This document shows, one piece after another, positions 31,425-60,930 of a stretch of 64,000 nt of DNA. Position 1 is the stretch's first letter. The number at the start of each line of letters is the position of its first letter. The position numbers and the translations under genes are program-made. The notes under the pieces are model-generated. The model saw only the letters and a program-made list of their open reading frames with translations. It had not been told where the DNA came from and ran no database searches. The stretch is taken from the sequence record NC_027402.1; one strand, given 5' to 3'.

Positions 31425-31462
31425 CAGGCATCCTTCGGGGTGCCTGTTTTATTTTTTTTCTT
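31425..31462 (+). terminator. Intrinsic terminator (UUCG loop)
   Basis: CAGGCATCC-ttcg-GGGTGCCTG then T run. Confidence 0.85.
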
Positions 31463-41183: not shown

Positions 41184-41669
41184 ATGAAACTACAAACCGA
41201 GGTTAAGGAAATACCCGCACAAACCGTGGCATCCGCGAGTGGACTGATACTGTCTATACCGTGCGACGAATTTAAAGACTCGGCCCGTCCCGACGAAACG
41301 ATATCGTTAGCATTACGTCGCGGACACGTTTTCTGTGAATTCGACGCGCCTGTGATTAAACCGTGTCAATCGTTCGGGGAAGTAAAGGCCGCCATTGATC
41401 GGATACGTTGTATTGAACTCGTACGCGTTTGCGGTTATGTATCGAACGTCTGCTATGGCGTTGTCGATGGTTACTTTCAACTCCGCGGTGAATTCACACC
41501 ACACGGCCCACTCAAAGCGTTAGCGATTGAAGTGATGCGTGCAGGCACCATCATGATTTCTCCACGTATAGAACTCGATGGATATGGGAAGATTGTTTGC
41601 ATCCCATCTTTCGATGTTGTGGCAGAAGAAACCCCACGTTATCAATTTCTACGTACGGTGAAACAATGA
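41184..41669 (+). CDS. Degenerate T4 gp21-like prohead protease paralog
   Basis: RGHVFCEFDAP, GEFTPHGP and ISPR line up with the GExxHP, (T/K)PxGP and SxR pattern; catalytic His not evident. Confidence 0.5.
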   Translation: MKLQTEVKEIPAQTVASASGLILSIPCDEFKDSARPDETISLALRRGHVFCEFDAPVIKPCQSFGEVKAAIDRIRCIELVRVCGYVSNVCYGVVDGYFQLRGEFTPHGPLKALAIEVMRAGTIMISPRIELDGYGKIVCIPSFDVVAEETPRYQFLRTVKQ

Positions 41670-43353: not shown

Positions 43354-43749
43354 GTGAAATTGATTATGCCTAAAACCGTTCCTAATCAGGATATGGTTAC
43401 GACTACACTGTTTTCTGAATCATTACGCAACTCTGTACGTCAGACCGCTTCACGTCTAGACGTGGCAGTTGAAGAACTCGACCCTGAAGTCTTCATGAAG
43501 TATGCGTTTATTGCAGAAGGTTACGCGATCGCCCTGACTTATGCGCGGTATGTCGATGACGTGACAGAAGCTAAACGTTATTTAGAAGGCTGTTGTCAAG
43601 TTTTCCGTGAAGAAATCACCGAGATGGAGATGGTTGACCGTGGCTTACCTGAATTTGTAAAGGTGGGTTACGATAAGTTGTTGCAATCCATCGCGGATGA
43701 GATCAAACGTCGCGGGTTAACTGTTGTGCACAGTGCTACACTGCACTAA
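43354..43749 (+). CDS. Hypothetical acidic helical protein (131 aa)
   Basis: SD TAAGGAG, GTG start. Confidence 0.75.
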   Translation: MKLIMPKTVPNQDMVTTTLFSESLRNSVRQTASRLDVAVEELDPEVFMKYAFIAEGYAIALTYARYVDDVTEAKRYLEGCCQVFREEITEMEMVDRGLPEFVKVGYDKLLQSIADEIKRRGLTVVHSATLH

Positions 43750-43763
43750 CAGCGTACGAGTAG

Positions 43764-43802
43764 GCTACCACACGATCATATGTGTGGTAGCTTATTTTTT
43801 TT
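43764..43802 (+). terminator. Intrinsic terminator
   Basis: GCTACCACAC...GTGTGGTAGC then T run. Confidence 0.8.
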
Positions 43803-43818
43803 GTTTCTGGAGGCGTTA

Positions 43819-44352
43819 ATGGCAGACCGCTATCAGCCCGACCTAACACTCTCGTCGAAAGCGCTTGTCGTGGCGTTAATTAATCACGATAACGGCTTGT
43901 CATTATCGCCTGACGAGATTGTGATAAGCGGAGTAGGGCCAATCGACTTAGGTGTTGAAAGTGCCCGTACCTCGCAAGCGTACATTGCGAAAGCACGTAA
44001 ACCTAACGGCAAGAAGGTTACCGTCTATTACGACCGTCTAGTCGCTAATAAGATTATCGACCCGCAAGGACCGATACTGGTTACTGTAGCTCCCGGCGAC
44101 ACCTATGGTGATTTAGCGACAGTTGTAAACCAGTTATGCGGTTTAAACTTGTCACGTGAAGACATCTCGACAGGGGTTATTACACCAACAAACGAGCCGT
44201 TGATTGCAGCGATGAGTGACGATTCACCGGCTTGGACGGCTACCTTTACATTCACGGCGTTTAATGAAAAAGAAGCTGTGGCAAGTCTGGATGAAGAAAC
44301 TGTTTTATGCATCGGTGATGATGCAGTGTTAACCTACGGAGACGATGCATAA
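43819..44352 (+). CDS. Virion structural protein with tail paralog N-domain (anchor)
   Basis: SD GGAGG; KKVTVYYDRL...VNQLCGLNLSREDI. Confidence 0.75.
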   Translation: MADRYQPDLTLSSKALVVALINHDNGLSLSPDEIVISGVGPIDLGVESARTSQAYIAKARKPNGKKVTVYYDRLVANKIIDPQGPILVTVAPGDTYGDLATVVNQLCGLNLSREDISTGVITPTNEPLIAAMSDDSPAWTATFTFTAFNEKEAVASLDEETVLCIGDDAVLTYGDDA

Positions 44353-44822
44353 TGGCAACTGTAGTCAAAAAGAAACGTTTGCATGAACTCGATTCTTACG
44401 ACGGTGATAAGTCGAGCGCAGTAGCGCTTATTAGCGTTGATGAAAAGGAGTACAAACTTCCTCTCAGTGAAATCGGCGGCGGGGCAGATGCAAACCCTAT
44501 CCAAAACTTATCCGGTGCTGACGGTATCGTTGAAATAGATCCCAATATTGCGGACGACTTCATTATCCGTTTAGGTGACCCCACCACTGCGCTTTCTATC
44601 ACACCTATTACCGACCCGGTTCCGGGTACGCGATATGAGTTATTACTGACGCTACGTCAGGGTACCGGTGCAAACAAAATCACCTGGCCGGCTTCGGTTA
44701 AATGGCCTAACGGTGCAGAACCTCCGTTATCGTACACGCTAGACGCCGAGGATGTGTTGTCTTTGTCATCTACGGATGGCGGTACAACCTGGAAAGGGGC
44801 CATTTGCGGAACAGGATACTAA
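44352..44822 (+). CDS. Tail-fibre-type adaptor protein
   Basis: LTLRQGTGANKITWPASVKWPNGAEP.LS....DVLSLSSTDGGTTW, a beta-sandwich common in phage tail-fibre proteins. Confidence 0.65.
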   Translation: MATVVKKKRLHELDSYDGDKSSAVALISVDEKEYKLPLSEIGGGADANPIQNLSGADGIVEIDPNIADDFIIRLGDPTTALSITPITDPVPGTRYELLLTLRQGTGANKITWPASVKWPNGAEPPLSYTLDAEDVLSLSSTDGGTTWKGAICGTGY

Positions 44823-44825
44823 GCC

Positions 44826-47800
44826 ATGCGCAAATTTAAAATCTCTGCTAAACGACATGCGTTGAACTACGCACTGTCGCTGGCTTACGGACATCAGGAC
44901 TTTGTTCGTCGAAACACCGGCTTAACTAACGACGCCCACAATGACCATTATCTGATTAACCCAGAAGGGGTGCTATCTAATAACCGGCATTTCATTGCTG
45001 ACTCCATGGCTGTGTATCAACCCAACGGTGACGCCACCACAGAAGGCCAATCGTTGCTGATTATTGGCTACTGTCACATGTACATTGCTACCAAAAACCA
45101 GATGTGGTTAGATGCGGCGATTCGTGCATGGGAAGCGTACGCTACCTACTATTACGCAGGTCAGGCCATTCCTGAGTCACCGCAACGTTGGATTTGTAAC
45201 TGGCTAGTTAACGGTAAAGAACCGGTGCTGTCAGACTATCCGGTGCATCCGACCGAGCCAACCCACGGTGGTTACAAGTGTGTACCGGTAACGTTTACGA
45301 ACGGGCGTTGTCAGATACCCCAAGGCGCACCGTTCTTTGGTGAATATCTGAACAATTTCTTTTCTGCACATCGTGGCCATCCTACCTGGGGAGCGGTTAA
45401 TGCTGACGTACAGAAAATTAAGGAATCGGAAGACGGGTTAATTGACTGGTCTAAAGTCCCTGATTACTTAATCACCAATCCAGAGAAACCTTACGATGTA
45501 AAAGCGTGGGTGGACTGGAACAGGATGTTAAACGACCCAACCGGATATACCCCAATATGGGGTGGTTCTACCTCGAAAGGTCCGCGGTACGAACCTGACT
45601 GGTTTGTTGTGTGGACGGGTGAGAAGGTTCAAGACGGAGAAGTCATCGAATCCGGTTTACCTGATGCCCAGAAAGGAACCGTACAATTAAAGGACACCAG
45701 TATTAACGGTGTATATTTGATTAACTACGCTTCCCAGGTACCTGTAGAGCACGGCGGATATTTGTTTGACCGCAATGAGCCGTGGCACAACCGTCCAGTT
45801 CATACCCCGTTAAAAGGGTCTGTTAACCAGATGGGTAACGCGGCAGATGCGGAAGTGTGGTTTATTGATGCCTGTTATCTGCTCTGGCGTATCACAGGTG
45901 AACCGCGCTATAAAGCCGCACTAGACTCGGTGTTCTATACAGCACACGAATACACGTATATCGATGCGAAGGACAAGTTTTTCCGTCGCTCTAAGTTAGC
46001 CGAAACACCATTTACAGATGGTATCTCGTACGACTATAAATACCCCAGCACCGTTGAGGTCGCTTACAGTCGTGATGAAAATGGTGACATTGTGCTCCGT
46101 TCTGAGGAAGCTGTGCAGAACTTTATGGAACAGCAAGCCGTGCGTTTCAGGATAAACAGTCAATCGAAGTTGCGTGTGACGTATGGTGGTGTTTGCGACA
46201 ACGGTGATGCGCTTGCGTGTAAAGTGATGGTGGATATTAACCCCGTTAAAGCGGATACTGAAGAAGTAAACTGGTACGGCTGTACGCTTCCAGGATCAAC
46301 ATCGATGGAAGTAAAACAGCATGACATCGGTTTAGGGCATCTGGCCAGAATGACTAATCCGGCCAACGGCGAAGATTACATCATTGCCGATGCGCGAGCA
46401 TGTTCAGATTACGGTGGGTGTACGTGGCAGGAGAAGTTTGAGAGCAACATCTACGATGGTCGTTCAGGCACAATCGTAGAAGCGTTATTCCCGAACGACG
46501 ATGCGGGCTTCATTATCGGTTTCTGGTTAACCGATGCTGGAGTTGCGCCCCCACAGTCAATTGTCTATCGTGCTGATGCCGATTTCAACTTCCGTTTCGA
46601 AGATACCAACAAGTGGCGTTGGTGGTGGATGTTGCCCGCGACTAACGGGGAATGGAAACAGGTTATTATTCGCCCTGAAGACGCAACACTCTCGGGCTAT
46701 CAACCTGACCACGATACCGATGTCGAAACAAAACCGTCTGCGCCAAACTACACAACTATCGATCAGGTAACCATACTGCCCGATTCGGCTGTGGAGAATG
46801 CGCACTTTAGCTGGTATTGCGTAAACGATGTTCCGCCACTGTTTAATGCAGATGATGGCTGGACATTAACGTTTCGCATCGCAATTCGGGGAGGTTCTGC
46901 ATTTACGGGTAAAGTGGGCGATTGTACGATAAAAGATTACCGTCTTGACTCGCTCGCGTATTGTCCAGGAACGATACCGTTCTCGAACATTTATTCGGAA
47001 GGAACGTATCAGCTAGGTGCATGGCACGGGATGCCGTATCCTGGCTATCAGTATCCGTTTATGTACACCATACACACCGATGATCGCTACAAAGTCTGGC
47101 TCTTAAATCAGATTCGGTTTATGCACGATTCACAAACCAACTACCAGGCGCAGTTAGGTGAGTTGGGTCCAGGTTGTGCGGCGTATATTTGGAACCGTTG
47201 GGATAACTACACTTACGGACCGGCAGATACGTGGACAACGTTCCATTGGGGAGATGGACATCCGTGGGCAGGTTATCAGCCGCGCGCGTATAACGCCGCT
47301 GCGCGTTGTTGGTACGAATTAGCTGTGCGTGGTAAAGAGGTTCCACCAGAGCTAGTAGAGTACGTTGAAAATTGGGCTAAGTGGCTCGTAGGGTTCTTAG
47401 ACCGCTTTGACAACCACACGCCGAATGAATTCCCTACGGCACCAAATAAACCGGTATGGGTAGAGAATGATTTCACAGCACATATGTGTGCGCTCTGGAT
47501 AGCAGGCAGCGCTTATGCGGCAATGGCTGGCTGTACAGTGGAAGGGTTGAGCCGTATTATGGATATGGGGATGAAGGAGATGGGTGACAACTTCACCGTC
47601 ACCGACATTCCAGGAAAAGCCATTAACGGTGCCTGGTCTCCGTGGGCAAATCCTACCACGGATAACGGTCAGGCTTTTGGGTTTTATACTGGAGAAGCGA
47701 TGCGTGCAATCGGGTTGTATCTCCTCTATAAAGAACACGGCCCAGGACATGATATTTATCGTGACTTGGCAATCCCCGACCACACAACAGCTTCACTCGA

Positions 47801-47843
47801 TATAACGTTTACTATCCCAGACGATCCGCTCGAAACTAATTAA
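44826..47843 (+). CDS. Large virion-associated glycoside hydrolase, GH8-like (alpha/alpha)6 barrel with inserted beta-domains
   Basis: DATTEGQSLL (E73) and NAADAEVWFIDACYLLW (D341) match GH8 (S/T)EGQ and ATDGD motifs; Trp/Tyr-rich CBM-like insert. Confidence 0.65.
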   Translation: MRKFKISAKRHALNYALSLAYGHQDFVRRNTGLTNDAHNDHYLINPEGVLSNNRHFIADSMAVYQPNGDATTEGQSLLIIGYCHMYIATKNQMWLDAAIRAWEAYATYYYAGQAIPESPQRWICNWLVNGKEPVLSDYPVHPTEPTHGGYKCVPVTFTNGRCQIPQGAPFFGEYLNNFFSAHRGHPTWGAVNADVQKIKESEDGLIDWSKVPDYLITNPEKPYDVKAWVDWNRMLNDPTGYTPIWGGSTSKGPRYEPDWFVVWTGEKVQDGEVIESGLPDAQKGTVQLKDTSINGVYLINYASQVPVEHGGYLFDRNEPWHNRPVHTPLKGSVNQMGNAADAEVWFIDACYLLWRITGEPRYKAALDSVFYTAHEYTYIDAKDKFFRRSKLAETPFTDGISYDYKYPSTVEVAYSRDENGDIVLRSEEAVQNFMEQQAVRFRINSQSKLRVTYGGVCDNGDALACKVMVDINPVKADTEEVNWYGCTLPGSTSMEVKQHDIGLGHLARMTNPANGEDYIIADARACSDYGGCTWQEKFESNIYDGRSGTIVEALFPNDDAGFIIGFWLTDAGVAPPQSIVYRADADFNFRFEDTNKWRWWWMLPATNGEWKQVIIRPEDATLSGYQPDHDTDVETKPSAPNYTTIDQVTILPDSAVENAHFSWYCVNDVPPLFNADDGWTLTFRIAIRGGSAFTGKVGDCTIKDYRLDSLAYCPGTIPFSNIYSEGTYQLGAWHGMPYPGYQYPFMYTIHTDDRYKVWLLNQIRFMHDSQTNYQAQLGELGPGCAAYIWNRWDNYTYGPADTWTTFHWGDGHPWAGYQPRAYNAAARCWYELAVRGKEVPPELVEYVENWAKWLVGFLDRFDNHTPNEFPTAPNKPVWVENDFTAHMCALWIAGSAYAAMAGCTVEGLSRIMDMGMKEMGDNFTVTDIPGKAINGAWSPWANPTTDNGQAFGFYTGEAMRAIGLYLLYKEHGPGHDIYRDLAIPDHTTASLDITFTIPDDPLETN

Positions 47844-47849
47844 GTGTAT

Positions 47850-47891
47850 ACCAGCTATCCTTCGGGGTGGCTGGTACGCTTTATTTTATTT
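47850..47891 (+). terminator. Intrinsic terminator (UUCG loop)
   Basis: ACCAGCTATCC-ttcg-GGGTGGCTGGT then T-rich. Confidence 0.8.
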
Positions 47892-47913
47892 CAGATAGAT
47901 GTTATCTCAGTGA
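47889..47913 (+). promoter_or_regulatory. Early-type promoter P7
   Basis: TTTCAGATA-GATGTTAT-CTCAGTGA. Confidence 0.7.
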
Positions 47914-53392: not shown

Positions 53393-54190
53393 ATGTCTTT
53401 TACTTCAAAACAGAATCTGCTAAAACTCATCAACGAAGAGAATAAGATAAGCCCACCGCTTACCTTTGACGATGTTGATATCGGACTGCCGGAGGTTGTG
53501 TCAGTAGACGGTCGTGATTCGGAGGTGGTACTAACCTCGAAAATGCGCGGTGATGAAGGTACGCAAGTGATTGTGGACTATCATCGTCGTCCATTAGAGG
53601 ACTACCTTACAGGCGATGTTGCCTTTGGCGATGAAGATGTGCATACCACGCACGACTTACTCGCGGCGATTAACGAGCGTTTTAATCTGTCTATCTTACC
53701 TGAGGATATCGAAGATAACCCCATTGATGGACAGACGCACACAGTCGTTGCTGTTGAAACTTCCCACGAGTGGCGAAGTCAAGCGGTCATCGAGCTGAAA
53801 CCTGCTACACCTCTGGCAGAAGTAGTAACCAATACAGAGTTGAGCGGTCTTCTGTACCCGGATCACCAGGACATCCAGTTGGGTCAGGCGTATATCTATT
53901 CGCGTGACATCGATTGTAGCCACATCTCTCGTTTCCTGAGCCTCTTAGCGGTCGGTATCGAGGTAGATGACACGGCGTTGGCAATCGAACTCAACAAATG
54001 TGTTCCTGAGATTTGGGTAGCTGAAGATACCCCATCCCCGTATAACCTGCGTGGTGCCACTGTCGTATTCGACGGCGTACCTGCAGACTTGCCGGGAGCA
54101 AATACGGCGTTCGCGAAAGTCGTGTCAGTGCAACTGACCGATAAATGTACGAACTTCCAGGGCAGCCTCAACCTACACTTTAACAACTAG
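53393..54190 (+). CDS. Tail/fibre-type virion paralog (N-anchor plus C-domain type 1)
   Basis: VDYHRRPL...INERFNLSILPEDI; LSGLLYP; ends LNLHFNN. Confidence 0.75.
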   Translation: MSFTSKQNLLKLINEENKISPPLTFDDVDIGLPEVVSVDGRDSEVVLTSKMRGDEGTQVIVDYHRRPLEDYLTGDVAFGDEDVHTTHDLLAAINERFNLSILPEDIEDNPIDGQTHTVVAVETSHEWRSQAVIELKPATPLAEVVTNTELSGLLYPDHQDIQLGQAYIYSRDIDCSHISRFLSLLAVGIEVDDTALAIELNKCVPEIWVAEDTPSPYNLRGATVVFDGVPADLPGANTAFAKVVSVQLTDKCTNFQGSLNLHFNN

Positions 54191-54200
54191 GAGGGTATAG

Positions 54201-55043
54201 GTGTCTATTTACGATAAGCCCTCGAAAGAGATGTTGTTAGATGCTATTAACCGACAGAACGGATTAACGGCCAATCCACTCACATGGGAGCAGGTTGCAA
54301 CTGGCTTCCCTGAGTCTGTCCAAACGCCTGGCGCTGACCGGAATACGCGTGTGCTCTTATACGGGTTGAACGGCAAGGGCTACAAAGGCAACGTTACGCT
54401 CGAATACGACCGTATCGAAATGGAAATTCTGTTCAGGAACGTAATACCGGTAGTCGTTGCCGACCCGGTAAATAAACTCTCTGAGTTGTTGCCGTTTCTG
54501 AATGCGAAATACGGCTTGTCTTTAGTTGCCGACGACATCGTTGACCAGTCAGTAAAAGATTTGGGAGAAAGCTGGTTAATCGATGTGACTATTAAGCCCG
54601 GTTGCTTGGCCTGGCAAGGTGGTTTCCGTTTACGCTTTGCGAAGTTCTTCCCGAACTTGGCGGATGTGGTGACGGATGTTGACCTCAGCGCAATTATCGC
54701 GCCGTTCGTGGTTGCTAGTAAACCACAGGCTGAGTATGTGGCGTATGGTTACGATTGGACTGAACTGCAAAAACAGTTCACTACCGATTGGGCTTACAAC
54801 CGCGCAATCACCGCGGCGGATGTTGAATTGCTGAACGAAGTGGTGCCATTAAAGTTTGCATATGTGACGGGGGCGGCTGCGCAACCTGAACAAATTGCAC
54901 TCCAAGGTGCGCGATTTATGGGGATAACTTCAGTCACACCGAACGATAGTTACAACCCCGATTATCAGCGTGTGGCGATTATCAAGCTAGCTGCGGACAG
55001 CAACTACGCCGGTAATCTCATCCTTCACTATCTCCCGATATAA
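54201..55043 (+). CDS. Tail/fibre-type virion paralog
   Basis: RNT...LEYDRI...LNAKYGLSLVADDI; ends LILHYLPI. Confidence 0.75.
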   Translation: MSIYDKPSKEMLLDAINRQNGLTANPLTWEQVATGFPESVQTPGADRNTRVLLYGLNGKGYKGNVTLEYDRIEMEILFRNVIPVVVADPVNKLSELLPFLNAKYGLSLVADDIVDQSVKDLGESWLIDVTIKPGCLAWQGGFRLRFAKFFPNLADVVTDVDLSAIIAPFVVASKPQAEYVAYGYDWTELQKQFTTDWAYNRAITAADVELLNEVVPLKFAYVTGAAAQPEQIALQGARFMGITSVTPNDSYNPDYQRVAIIKLAADSNYAGNLILHYLPI

Positions 55044-55053
55044 GGATTTTGAC

Positions 55054-55899
55054 ATGCCACTTTTAGCCACTGCTGAAAAGATTATTATCGCGGAGGTTAA
55101 CGTCGAAAACGATCTCGATTTAAAAGTCGAAGATGTGGTTTTCGGTGTCCCTGCGATTCCGACGTCTGACGAAGACCTGGCAAAAGCCAATGGTCATAAC
55201 GCGATGGTGCGCATTCAGGCTTTGGCCACCGCTAATGCTATCGGTGCCACCACCGTGTATTACGATCGTGTTGACTTCGCAGACATGTTTACCGACCCAG
55301 ACGGGATTCAACCTCTACGTGTTCCTGCACGTCTCGACGCTGTTTACCAGATGCATGACGTGGTCGGGTTAATTAACCAGTATTACGGTCTCAGCCTTAA
55401 ACCCGCAGATGTGGTGAATACCGAAATCGACAGGAAGACATGGCGTGTGGATCTGATTGCCACGCCCACTTCTTTAGGTTGGATAGGGCAACAACAGGTA
55501 CAGCTGTTACCAGGCGATGCGTTGCTTCCTGCAAACTTCGAACCCTTAACAGTGACACCTTACGAGTATCCGTATTTTAACATCAAGGTCGGTCAAGGTG
55601 CAGTTTATTCGTATCCCTGGCGCTTTGATAATTTCGCGGAGGAATTTCAACGACTAGGTGCTGCGATAACCGCAGAACGTCTGGCACAGATTCTCAAAAC
55701 GGTCACCGGTGATAACTGGACAACGTACCGTAACCCAATCGACTTTAACCTTCGTGAAGCCGTCGTCGTCTATAACGGGCGTAACAAAGCGGAATTACCA
55801 ACCAACCCAGCAGTCGACAACGTGCTGATTGTGGAGCTGTCGTTGTACTGTCTGAATTTTGGCGGGCGTTTGTATTTGCACTACAACGACCCTGATTAA
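55054..55899 (+). CDS. Tail/fibre-type virion paralog
   Basis: TVYYDRV...INQYYGLSLKPADV; ends LYLHYNDPD. Confidence 0.75.
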   Translation: MPLLATAEKIIIAEVNVENDLDLKVEDVVFGVPAIPTSDEDLAKANGHNAMVRIQALATANAIGATTVYYDRVDFADMFTDPDGIQPLRVPARLDAVYQMHDVVGLINQYYGLSLKPADVVNTEIDRKTWRVDLIATPTSLGWIGQQQVQLLPGDALLPANFEPLTVTPYEYPYFNIKVGQGAVYSYPWRFDNFAEEFQRLGAAITAERLAQILKTVTGDNWTTYRNPIDFNLREAVVVYNGRNKAELPTNPAVDNVLIVELSLYCLNFGGRLYLHYNDPD

Positions 55900-55920
55900 T
55901 CCTGAGTAAAGGAAGTAAGA

Positions 55921-56832
55921 ATGAAACCTTTAAACAAAACGTCCGATCAGCTGGTTCTGGATTTTATTAATGAGAAAAACCCAGACGCAGAACTGGAACT
56001 TTCTAAAATAACGCTCGGCACACCGACCCCTATTGTCGATGGAGGTGCCGATCGCAATACCAGCATGACCCTGACTGCGAAAAAGAACTCCGGGTACATC
56101 GGTACTCAGGACGTGACTTATAATCGCCTGGAAGGCAGTGCGCTGTTCCGTAACGTAACGGCATACCTCGACGTTAAACTGCCGAAAACCACCACAGACC
56201 TGCTGACGACCCTGAACACCCAATACGGATTGAAGCTGACCGAAGACGATATCGTTCCGGCGGCTATTCCGGAAAATACCAACCCGCCGCTGACTAACCC
56301 GAACGATCCGGACCCAGCACCGGTTGACCATGTCATTACCTTCAAAGAAGACTGCTACGCTTATCTGGGCAGCATCCCGGTTAAAATCGGTGCTAAGCCT
56401 CAGGTTGGTGAACGTCTGAGTCTGGTGGTAACACAAACCAAGCTCGACGGCCTGGTTTACCCAGATGGTCCAAGCGAAGCGAAGGGTCAGGGCTACATCT
56501 ACTCTTACGGTGTAGACTGCACAGCAATCGCAGCATTCCTGAAAGTACAGACGAAAGGTGTTATCGCTGGCGACTCTGCATTCCCGGTTGAGCTGAATAA
56601 AGTTGTGCCGGAACTGTGGGTTGCATCTGATGAGCCTGCGGATTATAACCTGAAAGGTGCTAACGTGTTGTACGTTGGTTCTACTGCTGACGACGGCACC
56701 GCTTCAGGCGACGATCCTAAGAAACCGGTTGAAGGTGCAAACACTGCTTACAACCAGGTTCTGCTGCTGCAGCTGGATGACACTCTGTGCACCAACTTCC
56801 AGGGCGTCATGTACCTGCACTTTAATGCCTAA
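55921..56832 (+). CDS. Tail/fibre-type virion paralog
   Basis: RNT...VTYNRL...LNTQYGLKLTEDDI; LDGLVYP; ends MYLHFNA. Confidence 0.75.
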   Translation: MKPLNKTSDQLVLDFINEKNPDAELELSKITLGTPTPIVDGGADRNTSMTLTAKKNSGYIGTQDVTYNRLEGSALFRNVTAYLDVKLPKTTTDLLTTLNTQYGLKLTEDDIVPAAIPENTNPPLTNPNDPDPAPVDHVITFKEDCYAYLGSIPVKIGAKPQVGERLSLVVTQTKLDGLVYPDGPSEAKGQGYIYSYGVDCTAIAAFLKVQTKGVIAGDSAFPVELNKVVPELWVASDEPADYNLKGANVLYVGSTADDGTASGDDPKKPVEGANTAYNQVLLLQLDDTLCTNFQGVMYLHFNA

Positions 56833-56845
56833 TTAGGCCTCGCTG

Positions 56846-56885
56846 GGAGGAGGAAATCCTCCTCCTGGCTACTCCTTTCTTTTTT
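56846..56885 (+). terminator. Probable terminator/attenuator within tail cluster
   Basis: GGAGGAGG-aaat-CCTCCTCC then T-rich. Confidence 0.55.
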
Positions 56886-56901
56886 GGCCGAGGAGGCTAT
56901 T

Positions 56902-57741
56902 ATGGCTTTATATAGTCTGTCTCAGCGACAATATCTGTACGATGCGATTAATGCCGAAAACCCGGATGCTGTTCTACCGATGGGTTTAGACAATGCTATC
57001 ATCGGTACGCCGAAAGCAATCACACCGACAGCAAGCGGTGCCAATACTGAGATTATCATTCGTGGTCGTCAAGGTCGTGGCTATATCGGTCCTCAGACGT
57101 TCCGTTATAAGCGCTTGTCGCTGAACGACTTATTTAAGAACATGACACCTCAGGTAACTGCACCGAATGCCTACGGTTGGTTGAACGTGGAGTCGAAACG
57201 TACTGCGTTTGCGCAGAACCTGAACGGTCGTTATGGATTAAACCTGGTTGCAGACGATATCCCAGAACAATACGTTTATCTGAACGTAAACAACACGATG
57301 CGTATTAACGCTAGCTGTATCCAATACACTGGCAGCATCACCTTTATGTCTATCCGGGGTAAGAATAGTCTCGAAGACCTCGTGGTAAACGACATCTTGT
57401 CGTCTTTGAACCACCCTGCAGCAGCAAGCACTGGTAAGAAATACATGGGCTTCTTGACGTACGGGGAAGACTTTACCGATGAAGTGCAGGTTATGGCCTC
57501 GTTTAAGAACGGGCGAATGGATGTAGGAAGTAACTTTGATTTGGGTTACACGTCCAATCTGATGGCCACATTGGTCGCACGTGGGGTACCGTCGTTTGAT
57601 CCGACGAACTGCACAATTACCCGCTACAAAACGAGTGAGTTGGCGACCGCCAATAAAGCGTACGATAACGTATTGCTGATTACCGGCATTCAGAACGACC
57701 CGAAAGTAATCGGCGAGTGTATGTTGCACTACAACAACTAG
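56902..57741 (+). CDS. Tail/fibre-type virion paralog
   Basis: SD AGGAGG; FRYKRLSL...LNGRYGLNLVADDI; ends CMLHYNN. Confidence 0.75.
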   Translation: MALYSLSQRQYLYDAINAENPDAVLPMGLDNAIIGTPKAITPTASGANTEIIIRGRQGRGYIGPQTFRYKRLSLNDLFKNMTPQVTAPNAYGWLNVESKRTAFAQNLNGRYGLNLVADDIPEQYVYLNVNNTMRINASCIQYTGSITFMSIRGKNSLEDLVVNDILSSLNHPAAASTGKKYMGFLTYGEDFTDEVQVMASFKNGRMDVGSNFDLGYTSNLMATLVARGVPSFDPTNCTITRYKTSELATANKAYDNVLLITGIQNDPKVIGECMLHYNN

Positions 57742-57751
57742 GAATTAGCGA

Positions 57752-58639
57752 ATGGCTATTTATCAACCTTCTAAAGACGTCCTGTTGGCAGCAGTGAACG
57801 CACAGAACTCGCTTGCTGTTAAGATGACTGACATCATCTGGTCCTCGCCAAAGGACATCCGTGGTACGGAAAAGGAAACGCTGACTAACCGTAACACGCA
57901 AATTAAAATTACGGCAGATGGGGTAACGGGCTCTACCTGGTCGGGTAAGAAAAATGTCTTCTACAACCGCATGAAAGTCGAAGACTTGTTAGTGCTGATT
58001 GGTGACACATTGGCGATCGGCCCATCCAACGAAACCTTGTATGCGGCCATTCCTGGACTGAACCAACGTTACGGTTTTGTTCTGGAAGAAGCTGACCTGC
58101 AGGACGCAGATATCGAGTGGAACGGTGATAAGACCGAAGGAACTGTGCGCGTTGTTGCACATCCAGAGTCTATCGGCTGGGTTGGACAGGCGACATTTAA
58201 AGTCGTGAAAGGCGATGAGTCGTTAGTCTCTGCAGTCACCACTAACGTCTTGACCGGTCTGAAATACCCGAACGGTCAGATGGGTTCCGAAACCGTTACT
58301 GCGGTCATTGCAGAGGTTTATTCCTACCCGTACAACTTCACTAAGTACCGAGATGCTCTGCTGGCATACAAGCCGGGTATTCTGTCTGGACAGCCGTTAA
58401 CGGATATGGTTAACCTGCTGAAAGATATCACGGGTACTGCATGGGTAGCGACCACTTCCGCTTCCTACGGTTTGGCGGGCGCGGAGGTTGTCAGTGTTGG
58501 TCTGAATGACCCTGTTGCAATGCCGACAAACGCGAAGTACAAGTATGCGCTGGTGTTGAAACTGCCTGTTACCTGTACCACCATCGCCGGAACGTTGTAT
58601 CTCCAGTTCAACGATCTGGACGATCCAAGCGAGGTATAA
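57752..58639 (+). CDS. Tail/fibre-type virion paralog
   Basis: RNT...VFYNRM...LNQRYGFVLEEADL; LTGLKYP. Confidence 0.75.
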   Translation: MAIYQPSKDVLLAAVNAQNSLAVKMTDIIWSSPKDIRGTEKETLTNRNTQIKITADGVTGSTWSGKKNVFYNRMKVEDLLVLIGDTLAIGPSNETLYAAIPGLNQRYGFVLEEADLQDADIEWNGDKTEGTVRVVAHPESIGWVGQATFKVVKGDESLVSAVTTNVLTGLKYPNGQMGSETVTAVIAEVYSYPYNFTKYRDALLAYKPGILSGQPLTDMVNLLKDITGTAWVATTSASYGLAGAEVVSVGLNDPVAMPTNAKYKYALVLKLPVTCTTIAGTLYLQFNDLDDPSEV

Positions 58640-58642
58640 TTG

Positions 58643-59470
58643 ATGATCAACTATGCTAAGCCGTCAAACGAGTTGGTCTTTGACCTCATTAACCGGGATA
58701 ACCCAAACCTACCTATTAAAGCGTCGCCGGCAAACTGCTACGTGGAGAAAGTGACACAGGTTCCCGTTAATGCAGCTTCCAACAACCGCAATACGTCGGC
58801 ACGCTTGCGCGGTATTCAGGGTTCCGGATTTCGAGACGCAATCACCGTTTACTACGACCGTGTGAACTTAGCGCGGTTATTGCCGTGGGGTCCTTCTGTC
58901 CAGGCGCAGTTCGTCACTTTTGATGCGCCCAACCTCCACTCAGCCTTTTCGGTGCTCTTGGATACTTACGGAGTAAACTTCTCTGCAATCGATATCTATA
59001 ACCTCCCACTGGCGGGTCCCAATACCCCAAATTACACCAATACACAGAACATCGTAGCGCTATCGACATCTCCGGCTTATATCGGTTCTGCGACGTTGCG
59101 TTATAACCGTGGTTTACCGGTACTAGACACTTCGGTGAAATCGGATGTCTTGAATGCGATTCAAGAGCCTATTTCACCGTCTCTCGGTAAGAAGTGTATT
59201 GATTTGTTGACGTACGGTATTGACTTTACCGCGTATAAAAACCTACTGACAGTAGATGCTTCTGGCCTACCGCAGTGGGCTGGTTTGCGTAAGGTGTTGG
59301 ATGACCTGGGTATTCCGAACTACGCGGGGCCACTGAACAGTAACACCGTTCAGGATGTGCCGACATCCACCGCACAGTTCGCTAACAAATCGTACGACCG
59401 CGTGGTTATCCAAACGGGTATCGATGAGGAAGGCGTGAAAGGCGTGGCGTACTACCACTATAACAGCTAA
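58643..59470 (+). CDS. Tail/fibre-type virion paralog
   Basis: RNT...TVYYDRV...TYGVNFSAIDI; ends AYYHYNS. Confidence 0.75.
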   Translation: MINYAKPSNELVFDLINRDNPNLPIKASPANCYVEKVTQVPVNAASNNRNTSARLRGIQGSGFRDAITVYYDRVNLARLLPWGPSVQAQFVTFDAPNLHSAFSVLLDTYGVNFSAIDIYNLPLAGPNTPNYTNTQNIVALSTSPAYIGSATLRYNRGLPVLDTSVKSDVLNAIQEPISPSLGKKCIDLLTYGIDFTAYKNLLTVDASGLPQWAGLRKVLDDLGIPNYAGPLNSNTVQDVPTSTAQFANKSYDRVVIQTGIDEEGVKGVAYYHYNS

Positions 59471-59475
59471 GTGTA

Positions 59476-59500
59476 GGGGCTCTTCGGAGCCCCCTCTTTT
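59476..59500 (+). terminator. Intrinsic terminator (UUCG loop)
   Basis: GGGGCTC-ttcg-GAGCCCC then CTCTTTT. Confidence 0.75.
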
Positions 59501-59517
59501 GGCGATGCGGAGTCCCT

Positions 59518-60930
59518 ATGCTATTTTACTCGAAGGAGTCGGCACTGCTTGTATACGACCAAGTCAATCGGGATAACCCTGATTTAGTTGTTAAGCTGAC
59601 GCCGGCTATCGCTGCTTTAACCAGTGGCCCAACTTCAGTTACGTTAAACCAACGTAACACCAAAGCTGTTTTCACCGGGTATCCAGGGACAGGTGTACAA
59701 GGTAATGTTACCGTGTACTACGACCGGATTAACCTGGCCACTTTATTTAATTTTGTGCCGACTGTGGCTATCAAAGATACAGTCTTAACGGTACGAGACG
59801 CGCTACCTGCAATAAACGACGCATTGGGGCTTACATTAGTTGCTTCTGATTTGCAGTTACCTGACGCAAGTCTACCTAAACCGAGCGCTTCGCCGCAGAC
59901 GCTGAAATTAAATATTTCAGGTAATTGCCCTGCGTTTACAGGCAGCTTAACGATACGTTATACCGTCCCGAGCGGTGCAATTTACCCCGATTCTGGACCT
60001 GGCCCTAAAACGTTGCTGCAAGGTAACACTATCGCGGGTTATTTCGGAACAACCAGAACTGCAGAGTTGTTTACACACTCTCAACTTCTTAATGCCACTA
60101 TATCGGCCGGTGCGTTACCACCGGTACATTCTGGTGCCGAAGGTTGGTACAAGTTCTTTTACCAGGGTAGGGTTATTTACCTCCCGATCAGTCCTGTCGC
60201 TAGCTCCATCTCCTGGAATACGTTATATACAAACGGACTCGTTTACGGAACAGATGATAATGGTAAATACCCTGCGGCGACGCCCGTTAACCAGGGACGC
60301 ATCATTAGCTTTACAGGCGCAGACAACAAAAGGTTTTACTTCCGTGTTCGTCTACCTAGTGCCGGGAAAGACCCATACGTCAGCGGCACCCCAACTGCCG
60401 CTGAGTTAGCAGGTAGTGAGTTTGAGATGTTCAACTTTCTGTATAATGGAACGTGGGACAAACCGATTAACAGTTACTGGACGCTGTTCTGTTTATTGAA
60501 AGATACACTGAAGACCAACGTCGCCTATCATCGCATGGCGACGTTGTCTGGAGCAAGTTGGACAAACTTAGAAAAATCATCGAGTGCGGGCAACTACTAC
60601 TGGTTCCCGGTGCTGGAGTTGGTGGATAAGTCCACAGTTACCTTGGGTTTAGAAGATATCCACGGTACGGCAGATTACAGTCTCCAACCGTGCAGCGTGT
60701 CCGCAGAAAACACATTTAGTCTCAAGCCGTTAGTGCTCGGTAATCCGGATACTACCGATTTCGAACCGGTAGTTGTTGCTTCAGAAAACAGTTTCGCACT
60801 GCATCCGCCTGCTTTAATGCTGCCGAAGACAGTCGACTTCCAACCTATTGCGGCTACCGCTGAAATGTATACGCCCCCTGACAAGACAACGTTAACGTCT
60901 CTTAACGGTGAACTGGACGGCTTTAAGTAG
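59518..60930 (+). CDS. Tail/fibre-type virion protein (N-anchor plus GPGP domain plus repeat tail)
   Basis: TVYYDRI; SGPGPKTLLQGNTIAGYFG; two SENxFxLxP repeats; ends ELDGFK. Confidence 0.75.
   Translation: MLFYSKESALLVYDQVNRDNPDLVVKLTPAIAALTSGPTSVTLNQRNTKAVFTGYPGTGVQGNVTVYYDRINLATLFNFVPTVAIKDTVLTVRDALPAINDALGLTLVASDLQLPDASLPKPSASPQTLKLNISGNCPAFTGSLTIRYTVPSGAIYPDSGPGPKTLLQGNTIAGYFGTTRTAELFTHSQLLNATISAGALPPVHSGAEGWYKFFYQGRVIYLPISPVASSISWNTLYTNGLVYGTDDNGKYPAATPVNQGRIISFTGADNKRFYFRVRLPSAGKDPYVSGTPTAAELAGSEFEMFNFLYNGTWDKPINSYWTLFCLLKDTLKTNVAYHRMATLSGASWTNLEKSSSAGNYYWFPVLELVDKSTVTLGLEDIHGTADYSLQPCSVSAENTFSLKPLVLGNPDTTDFEPVVVASENSFALHPPALMLPKTVDFQPIAATAEMYTPPDKTTLTSLNGELDGFK

Follow-up and report, generated by a model that had tools for sequence, protein, structure and literature searches.

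Which structure of the virion is encoded by the three-gene cassette at positions 43819-47843 of the DNA stretch analyzed here, and what does its largest product do? The window, that is the whole stretch of 64,000 nucleotides, corresponds to bases 62001-126000 of Salmonella phage SPN3US, a 240-kb chimallivirus (Seoulvirus), a window coordinate being the record coordinate minus 62000. Positions 43700-47900 match bases 105700-109900 of the SPN3US record (JN641803 / NC_027402) with 100% identity, and the three open reading frames (ORFs) of the cassette, all on the + strand, are exactly SPN3US_0122, SPN3US_0123 and SPN3US_0124 (gp122, gp123 and gp124). The first two are annotated as hypothetical in GenBank and the third as a ‘tail-associated protein’; the RefSeq labels are ‘virion structural protein’, ‘tail fiber protein’ and ‘tail protein’, respectively. 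The best explanation found for the cassette is that it encodes a low-copy appendage made of gp122, gp123 and gp124 and located at the tail side of the SPN3US virion. Taken as a whole, this explanation attracts about as much belief as doubt. The part of it that describes gp124 as a tail-side six-hairpin glycan-directed protein stands on firmer ground than the whole, while the link to gp122 is less secure. The components of the cassette are distributed as follows (window coordinates):

43819 to 44352, + strand: gp122 (SPN3US_0122), 177 amino acids, DUF7941 N-terminal domain only (ORF call, Pfam)
43840 to 44292, + strand: Pfam DUF7941 match of gp122, residues 8-158 (Pfam)
44352 to 44822, + strand: gp123 (SPN3US_0123), 156 amino acids, small tail-fibre-type protein (ORF call, PHROG, proteomics)
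44499 to 44819, + strand: gp123 C-terminal beta-sandwich domain, residues 50-156 (model, alignment)
44826 to 47843, + strand: gp124 (SPN3US_0124), 1005 amino acids, 113.7 kDa, PHROG 2871 (ORF call, PHROG, proteomics)
44826 to 45155, + strand: predicted gp124 helical-core segment 1, residues 1-110, with TTEGQ; E73 codon at 45042-45044 (AlphaFold model)
45156 to 45842, + strand: predicted first beta-rich insert of gp124, residues 111-339 (AlphaFold model)
45843 to 45953, + strand: predicted gp124 helical-core segment 2, residues 340-376, with NAADAE; D341 codon at 45846-45848 (AlphaFold model)
45954 to 47060, + strand: predicted jelly-roll, carbohydrate-binding module (CBM)-like beta-sandwich region of gp124, residues 377-745 (AlphaFold model, Foldseek, PHROG 23426)
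47061 to 47840, + strand: predicted gp124 helical-core segment 3, residues 746-1005, six long helices between residues 756 and 971 (AlphaFold model)

The three ORFs are as tightly packed as the initial annotation of this DNA had described them: gp122 and gp123 share one base (44352), and a gap of 3 nt separates gp123 from gp124.

Published proteomics establishes the presence of gp123 and gp124 in the virion and on its tail side. Purified virions contain both proteins, gp123 at low abundance, and the ‘Head’ flag is given to neither of them (Ali 2017); gp124 (113.7 kDa) is represented by 39 unique peptides and 73 spectra, with an SC/M of 0.64 and 48% coverage, and gp123 (16.5 kDa) by 5 peptides, with an SC/M of 0.42 (Ali 2017, Suppl. 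Table 1). In three tailed preparations, gp124 yielded 79, 72 and 64 spectra, and none in tailless particles, while gp123 was detected in a tailed preparation only (Thomas 2016, Table S4). The 12-copy portal exhibits an SC/M of 0.93 in the SPN3US proteomics and, by comparison with it, gp124 would be a low-copy component, with perhaps about six copies per virion. The cassette had been proposed to be mounted on the virion: this holds for gp123 and for gp124, which is lost in tailless particles, but does not extend to gp122, which went undetected.

The working part of the appendage would be gp124, a single chain combining an (alpha/alpha)6 core with two beta-rich inserts, one of which contains CBM-like jelly rolls. 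The AlphaFold2 model of gp124, built on 50 relatives, is confident (predicted local distance difference test (pLDDT) 89.2; predicted TM-score (pTM) 0.86). It displays 11 long helices (residues 2-29, 72-89, 92-109, 340-357, 360-375, 756-777, 817-834, 841-860, 885-901, 908-921 and 952-971) falling into three segments (1-110, 340-376, 746-975), which are split by beta-rich stretches at residues ~110-339 and 376-745. A Foldseek search of the PDB with this model returns several glycoside hydrolase (GH) families, namely GH116 beta-glucosidases (probability 0.94-0.99, TxGH116 chains), GH48 cellulases (probability 1.00, 327 columns) and one GH78 rhamnosidase (probability 0.94), together with CBM11 (probability 1.00, TM-score normalised to target 0.52-0.54) and CBM22 (probability 0.44-0.47). 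The whole-chain TM-scores are low (0.1-0.25), as expected for a split multi-domain chain. The same search against BFVD finds other phage tail proteins only, and the sub-threshold Pfam matches recorded in gp124 relatives involve six-hairpin families only (GH47, GH76, GH127). From the model, gp124 is predicted with confidence to adopt a six-hairpin glycosidase-like fold, with an (alpha/alpha)6-type core and beta-sandwich CBM-like domains. The insert of ~250 residues, the CBM-like region and the closing helices that had been read from the sequence are all real features of this model; the (alpha/alpha)6 barrel is likewise supported at the fold level, a fold that many families besides GH8 possess.

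The core of gp124 has in common with the six-hairpin hydrolases (GH116, GH48, GH78 and the GH8 enzyme BcsZ) a helical toroid; it differs from them in being split by two large inserts, and none of these families exhibits a significant sequence-profile match to gp124. The protein also invites comparison with the classical beta-helix trimeric tailspikes, being, like them, carried by the virion, with a predicted action on glycans of the host surface. In contrast to these depolymerases, gp124 combines a helical toroid with jelly rolls and is not hypervariable but strongly conserved from host to host; judging from its model, it is probably not a trimeric beta-helix.

The TTEGQ (E73) and NAADAE (D341) motifs are present as first described, are invariant in the 50 relatives, and are also found in relatives down to 28% identity. 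Conservation was counted over 270 relatives aligned to the gp124 family profile, with a denominator for each residue: H55 is kept in 187/192, E73 in 196/200, Q75 in 193/200, D341 in 221/223, W345 in 217/223, D593 in 230/233, Q742 in 235/237, Q770 in 239/240 and R820 in 236/241. As far as the aligned sequences tell, these conserved polar residues would be more in keeping with an active or ligand site than with a scaffold, and they may be gathered in one cleft. The site formed by H55, E73, Q75, D341, W345, Q742, Q770 and R820 would most likely bind, and probably cleave, a host-envelope glycan that many Gram-negative hosts share; both the activity on glycans and the nature of the substrate are parts of the proposal rather than observations.

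A different role is conceivable for the same fold: gp124 might be non-enzymatic, serving at the baseplate periphery as a structural hub or lectin in which the glycosidase fold is kept as a binding module or fibre scaffold. With 45-60% identity between phages of different genera, it is conserved to an unusual degree for a host-range protein. The baseplate/fibre module of phi92 and rV5-type phages includes the gene, with large variable fibre genes beside it, and the fibre I and II arms of phi92 are still unassigned; moreover, no catalytic base has been identified in gp124. On the other side, the best-kept residues are polar or charged and belong to the helical core (E73, Q75, D341, Q742, Q770, R820; 96-99%), which resembles an active or ligand site more than a scaffold, every fold match is an active glycoside hydrolase or a CBM, and a glycosidase- or hydrolase-like nature had already been ascribed to phi92 gp141 and Goslar gp92 by earlier authors. 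The hub or lectin role is, on this evidence, unlikely. A slightly better case, possible though doubtful in its details, can be made for gp124 and its relatives being an uncatalogued six-hairpin GH family, perhaps very distant kin of GH8 and GH48, with E73 as the acid and a shared Gram-negative envelope glycan as the target. This enzyme would be hung on DUF7941 filaments either by fusion, as in phage Goslar, or through a split and exchangeable gp122-gp123 pair whose alleles would tune docking or host contact.

The initial annotation had gone further and placed gp124 in GH8, as an inverting beta-1,4-glycanase and possibly a biofilm cellulase, with E73 as the acid and D341 as the signature Asp. 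E. coli K-12 BcsZ (NC_000913.3) and its relatives (16 aligned) served as the GH8 comparator in profile-profile hhalign comparisons. The gp124 family yields a single match of 8 columns to the BcsZ profile, with a probability of 0.7%; it aligns gp124 70-77 with BcsZ 52-59 (ATTEGQSL vs TTSEGQSY), i.e. with the BcsZ E55 motif. Segment 1 alone aligns at the same motif (P=0.0095, probability 4.3%). Segment 2 aligns in colinear order, residues 333-379 to BcsZ 108-156 (P=0.17, probability 0.4%), which puts NAADAE..W of gp124 on SASDGD.W of BcsZ. For segment 3 (735-1005), no colinear similarity to BcsZ is found (P=0.45), a value equal to that of the two gp124 inserts, which were used as controls and exhibit no similarity to BcsZ (P 0.42-0.45). 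No catalytic base is identifiable when this C-terminal half, its expected site, is compared to the BcsZ profile. In the short E55 alignment, gp124 would resemble BcsZ in having a conserved acidic residue where a core helix begins, within a T-x-E-G-Q context; a match over 8 columns is no proof of homology.

The assignment to GH8 can draw on the fact that the only local match of the family profile falls on the E55 motif, on the colinear order of the second motif, on the 98-99% conservation of E73 and D341, and on the presence of GH48 among the fold matches, GH48 and GH8 belonging to one CAZy clan. It is opposed by the very low hhalign probabilities and by the lack of similarity in the C-terminal half. 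In addition, Pfam GH8 PF01270 does not match gp124 at E<=1, neither PF01270 nor PF02011 matches any of the 50 relatives at E<=10, and GH8 is absent from the top 50 Foldseek matches, in which GH116 ranks higher. Regarding the substrate, the gp124 family occurs in phages of very different hosts, flagella are the reported receptor of SPN3US, and nothing was found that favors or bears on cellulose or a biofilm target, which is speculation. Membership of GH8 is not upheld, and a GH8 cellulase is an improbable identity for gp124. As compared here by sequence, the two motifs appear to be genuine local resemblances to GH8 and not a sign of family membership.

A degenerate second copy of the T-T-x-x-G-Q pattern, TTDNGQ, is encoded at 47640-47690 (gp124 ~940-956), near the last core helix. 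In the comparison by segments, it too was aligned with the E55 motif of BcsZ, and it may reflect an internal repetition of helical hairpins.

The gp124 family is widespread. PHROG 2871 (‘tail protein’) matches gp124 over its full length (E=0, 1512 bits) and PHROG 23426 matches residues 518-675, while searches of Pfam, NCBIfam and PDB sequences give no significant match with gp124, nor does its family profile match PDB sequences; NCBIfam holds no family for gp122 or gp123 either. Relatives of gp124 amount to 260 clusters in a set of 5.8 billion proteins, to 375 representative clusters in an exhaustive hidden Markov model search of 1.84 billion representatives, and to 541 records among annotated phage entries; they also occur in bacterial genome assemblies. 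Among the 150 of the 375 clusters that were listed, all strong members of the gp124 family, no bridge to a named cellular GH family was found. The phages concerned infect many different hosts and include members of Kolesnikvirus, Rosemountvirus and Asteriusvirus. Identity to gp124 reaches 40% for phi92 gp141, 37% for Goslar gp92, 30% for Vibrio phages and 26-28% for rV5-type proteins.

Distant relatives display a different modular context. In one set (P0210, P0214, P0223, P0267, P0170), the C-terminal two thirds of the gp124 module are fused to the siphophage tail-tip modules PF06605 and PF05939; fusions to a PF01471 peptidoglycan-binding domain and to a non-contractile tail sheath TIM barrel occur in the same set. 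Pfam scans of the distant members return only tail-tip modules and sub-threshold GH76 matches, PF01471 being present in a single relative.

These relatives raise the question of whether gp124 could be a tail-associated peptidoglycan hydrolase that aids penetration. Fusion to tail-tip modules, and in one case to PF01471, would suit such a function, and a substrate common to all hosts would account for the high conservation. Against this, gp124 exhibits no similarity to known muramidase or transglycosylase families, PF01471 is confined to one relative, and in the phages examined the gene is linked to genes of fibres and of the peripheral baseplate, not to those of the central spike or tape measure. 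A peptidoglycan hydrolase is therefore the least probable of the identities considered for gp124, and a highly improbable one.

The second protein, gp123, would be a fibre or adaptor subunit that couples to gp124 via its conserved C-terminal beta-sandwich. PHROG ‘tail fiber protein’ families match the C-terminal 90-130 residues of gp123, PHROG 9017 with an E-value of 1.4e-61; Pfam PF26209 (Phage_phiTE_241_C), which is carried by relatives, does not match gp123 itself. In the gp123 model, residues 1-46 are disordered and residues 50-156 form a beta-sandwich (pLDDT 75-89), in line with the tail-fibre-type beta-sandwich previously assigned to this protein. Its fold matches are weak (best E 0.012, none with E<=0.001) and comprise an Acinetobacter phage tailspike, a Klebsiella phage baseplate and PDB 6o38, a ‘chaperone-substrate complex’ that we take to be the Mu tail-fibre complex. 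Searches of PDB sequences with gp122 and gp123 returned nothing significant.

A small gene is found directly upstream of the gp124-type gene in phi92, an rV5-like phage, Vibrio phage D532, Rosemountvirus, Kolesnikvirus and Erskinevirus. Alignment identifies a C-terminal domain common to gp123, phi92 gp140, the rV5-type protein and the D532 protein, while their N-termini differ, that of the rV5-type protein being the tailspike anchor domain PF18668. The pairs phi92 gp140 and gp141, PVP-SE1 gp051 and gp050, and the rV5-type proteins of 222 and 865 amino acids constitute the same two-gene module as gp123 and gp124. In phi92 and rV5-type phages, the pair is located within the baseplate and fibre gene cluster, whereas in SPN3US it is isolated among small genes, with a DUF7941 gene upstream; phi92, PVP-SE1 and rV5-type phages, unlike SPN3US, are devoid of DUF7941 proteins. 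Phi92 gp141 is listed as ‘Glycosidase’ in a review citing Schwarzer 2012, a label that is second-hand there. The product gp42 of rV5 was detected in virions; from gene order and size, we assign it as the gp124 homologue. A conserved C-terminal domain combined with lineage-specific N-termini fits the adaptor role that had been put forward for gp123; taking it for an adaptor or for a small subunit of a fibre is reasonable, though unproven.

Two further ideas on gp123 were dropped. Metagenomic contigs refute the notion that a gp123-type domain always adjoins a gp124-type gene. A relationship between the gp123 C-terminal domain and the DUF7941 linker, prompted by a weak match to phiKZ gp127 (E 0.77), found no consistent matches to the paralogs in the window. 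To note, a metagenomic protein of 293 residues, P0199, associates a gp124-like N-terminus (9-195) with a gp123-like C-terminal domain (203-275), and may represent a fragment, a hybrid or a genuine fusion.

The third component, gp122, would tie gp123 and gp124 to the outer-baseplate DUF7941 network of chimalliviruses. Pfam DUF7941 matches gp122 with 65.3 bits (cut-off 27; E 8e-18) over profile positions 3-162 of 276. The protein has an acidic C-terminal tail and ends at profile position 162-184, without the DUF7941 C-domain. The same family is found further downstream:

53393 to 60930, + strand: DUF7941 paralog array (‘paralog family B’) (Pfam, profile)

This array begins 5.5 kb downstream of gp124 and comprises seven full-length DUF7941 members and one N-domain-only member of 470 amino acids; two of the paralogs in the window match DUF7941 with E-values of 8e-68 and 2e-79. 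The presence of one and the same N-terminal domain in gp122 and in the array, an anchor domain in the initial annotation, is confirmed. Weaker matches extend to 63231. The 470-residue paralog (59518-60930) consists of a DUF7941 N-domain (1-149) followed by ~320 residues outside DUF7941, and resembles the Goslar proteins in which DUF7941 is joined to other domains.

A profile of gp122 and the paralogs hits PDB 9xqd, phiKZ gp127, with an E-value of 1.7e-24. This protein, of the same DUF7941 family as gp122 and the window paralogs, occupies the outer peripheral baseplate, its N-domain being modelled at the tip of the gp139 band (PMC13250141); gp122 differs from it in being reduced to the N-terminal domain and a short tail. 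In Goslar, also a chimallivirus, head-to-tail DUF7941 filaments have been reported and proposed to form a baseplate-anchored ‘fiber cloud’, and in gp86, gp92 and gp161 a DUF7941 module is reported to be followed by carbohydrate-binding domains, hydrolase domains and/or leucine-rich repeats (bioRxiv 10.64898/2026.04.21.720040). Head-to-tail oligomerisation and attachment to the outer baseplate are known from phiKZ gp127 (structure) and Goslar gp22 (negative stain) only. Goslar gp23 and gp91, like gp122, are DUF7941 proteins without the C-domain.

The locus of Goslar is the closest counterpart of the cassette. Residues 277-1188 of Goslar gp92 (YP_009820777.1) align with gp124 19-966 with 37% identity over 970 columns, both motifs being kept, and gp92 possesses an extra N-terminus of ~275 residues relative to gp124. 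The adjoining gp91 is a 175-residue DUF7941 N-domain-only protein (NC_048170.1), so that gp91 stands beside gp92 as gp122 stands near gp124. The Goslar hydrolase-like body thus carries its own N-terminal extension, which SPN3US gp124 lacks, and in SPN3US the gp123 gene stands between gp122 and gp124. The Goslar preprint gives gp92 a role in host recognition. SPN3US would accordingly use three genes for what may exist in Goslar as the fusion gp92 with its gp122-like neighbour gp91. A sub-threshold DUF7941 N-terminus is also seen in P0232, a metagenomic relative of gp124.

Comparison with Seoulvirus Lh1B, a phage with an E. coli host, delimits within the cassette a segment that has been replaced:

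43929 to 44864, no strand assigned: allelic block comprising gp122 from about residue 37, the whole of gp123 and the first 13 codons of gp124 (comparison with Lh1B)

This block of 936 bp has no DNA match in Lh1B, although its flanks are 95-96% identical. The corresponding protein identities between Lh1B and SPN3US are 49% for gp122, 41% for gp123 and 97% for gp124, and Lh1B gp122 is closer to a protein of Erwinia phage Asesino than to SPN3US gp122. EC001 (E. coli host) and JN03 (Salmonella host) exhibit the same two-piece match as Lh1B, with 77% coverage, which suggests that they lack the SPN3US version of the block and probably carry the other allele. Since the bulk of gp122, gp123 in its entirety and the tip of gp124 are exchanged as a unit between near-identical genomes, these parts may be argued to work together.

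A rival account concerns the place of gp122. It might lie outside the appendage, as an assembly factor for gp123 and gp124 or as a further DUF7941 subunit that is merely co-transcribed. Consistent with this, gp122 was not detected in wild-type virions, and only the SPN3US/Erskinevirus lineage has a gp122-type gene along with the pair, Goslar having a neighbour of this type, while an unrelated gene occupies the upstream position in phi92, the rV5-like phage, the Vibrio phage and Rosemountvirus. However, the variable part of gp122 is swapped with gp123 as one block, Goslar retains a gp122-like gene beside its gp124-like gene, and the non-detection of gp122 is weak evidence of absence because gp123, of similar size, gave just 5-7 spectra. 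A position of gp122 outside the appendage is hence possible, though we find it rather doubtful; its membership of the appendage, with contacts among gp122, gp123 and gp124 and a position at the baseplate, would be what the exchanged block and the Goslar arrangement point to.

Several observations weigh against the appendage as proposed. By sequence, gp124 has no significant match to a known GH family (Pfam, PDB sequences, 50 relatives, BcsZ profile), the position of E73 and D341 in a cleft is one that we infer, and catalysis and mere binding are both possible functions of the site. The gp123-type domain is found also away from gp124-like genes, in metagenomic contigs, and the Goslar locus lacks a gp123-like domain. 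The DUF7941 module of Goslar gp92 is a point taken from the preprint, our own profiles detecting no DUF7941 in its N-terminus (E 0.17). As for gp122, mass spectrometry of SPN3US virions failed to detect it. Finally, SPN3US proteomics assigns the DUF7941 paralogs (‘paralog family B’) to the head, on account of their persistence in tailless particles, in conflict with a baseplate network and in contrast to phiKZ gp127, which is in the baseplate. Free DUF7941 filaments that co-purify with the particles might reconcile the two views. The description of the array as tail paralogs, made before, accordingly agrees with the outer-baseplate location of DUF7941 proteins in phiKZ and Goslar but not with the head assignment made in SPN3US itself.

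The cassette is delimited on both sides by terminator-like hairpins:

43758 to 43797, + strand: upstream terminator-like hairpin, 17-bp stem followed by a T-run (hairpin scan)
47849 to 47876, + strand: downstream terminator-like hairpin, 12-bp stem, TTCG loop and T-rich tail (hairpin scan)

The hairpin scan detects no strong + strand terminator-like site between the two, in agreement with the terminator-bounded unit that had been described. The upstream hairpin ends 21 nt before the gp122 start codon, and a GGAGG ribosome-binding site is located at 43810-43814, the gp122 ATG lying 5 nt further on. The total number of terminator-like hits in the window is no higher than in shuffles. Strong intergenic sites (>=9 pairs, 5-6 GC) recur on the coding strand at intervals of 1-5 kb; those on the + strand are found at 31425, 32154, 33760, 38101, 39176, 43758, 47849, 51924, 53245 and 59476, and many of the hairpins between 31425 and 59493 have a TTCG tetraloop and a T-rich tail. 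This recurrence suggests, at the sequence level, a series of short transcription units; because similar strong sites recur, the cassette is one of several hairpin-delimited blocks and is not unique in this respect. It is not distinguished by composition either, its GC content being 0.47-0.49 against 0.44-0.48 outside, and the idea of a recently acquired island was dropped, the base composition of the cassette being the same as that of its flanks. Upstream, an ORF of 161 amino acids at 41184-41669 bears the RefSeq label ‘head maturation protease’; the SPN3US prohead protease of the literature is gp245, encoded elsewhere in the genome.

The cassette is not a new kind of system. The gp124 family, its presence in virions, its glycosidase-like reading (phi92 gp141, SPN3US proteomics, Goslar gp92) and the link to DUF7941 were already known; the split arrangement in SPN3US, the allelic block, the negative outcome of the GH8 comparison and the list of conserved-site residues are new. 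The SPN3US cassette is a natural split version of the DUF7941-hydrolase fusion of Goslar, and it bears on the conflict between DUF7941 paralogs as head proteins and as baseplate-anchored filaments. Among the conserved tail proteins of large myoviruses, those of the gp124 type rank with the most widespread, being found in phi92-, rV5-, PVP-SE1- and FelixO1-related phages, Rosemountvirus, Asteriusvirus and chimalliviruses. The target of gp124 could help to assign the unexplained fibre density in the maps of phi92 and phiTE and, once known, its ligand or substrate would explain a conserved, host-independent step of adsorption.

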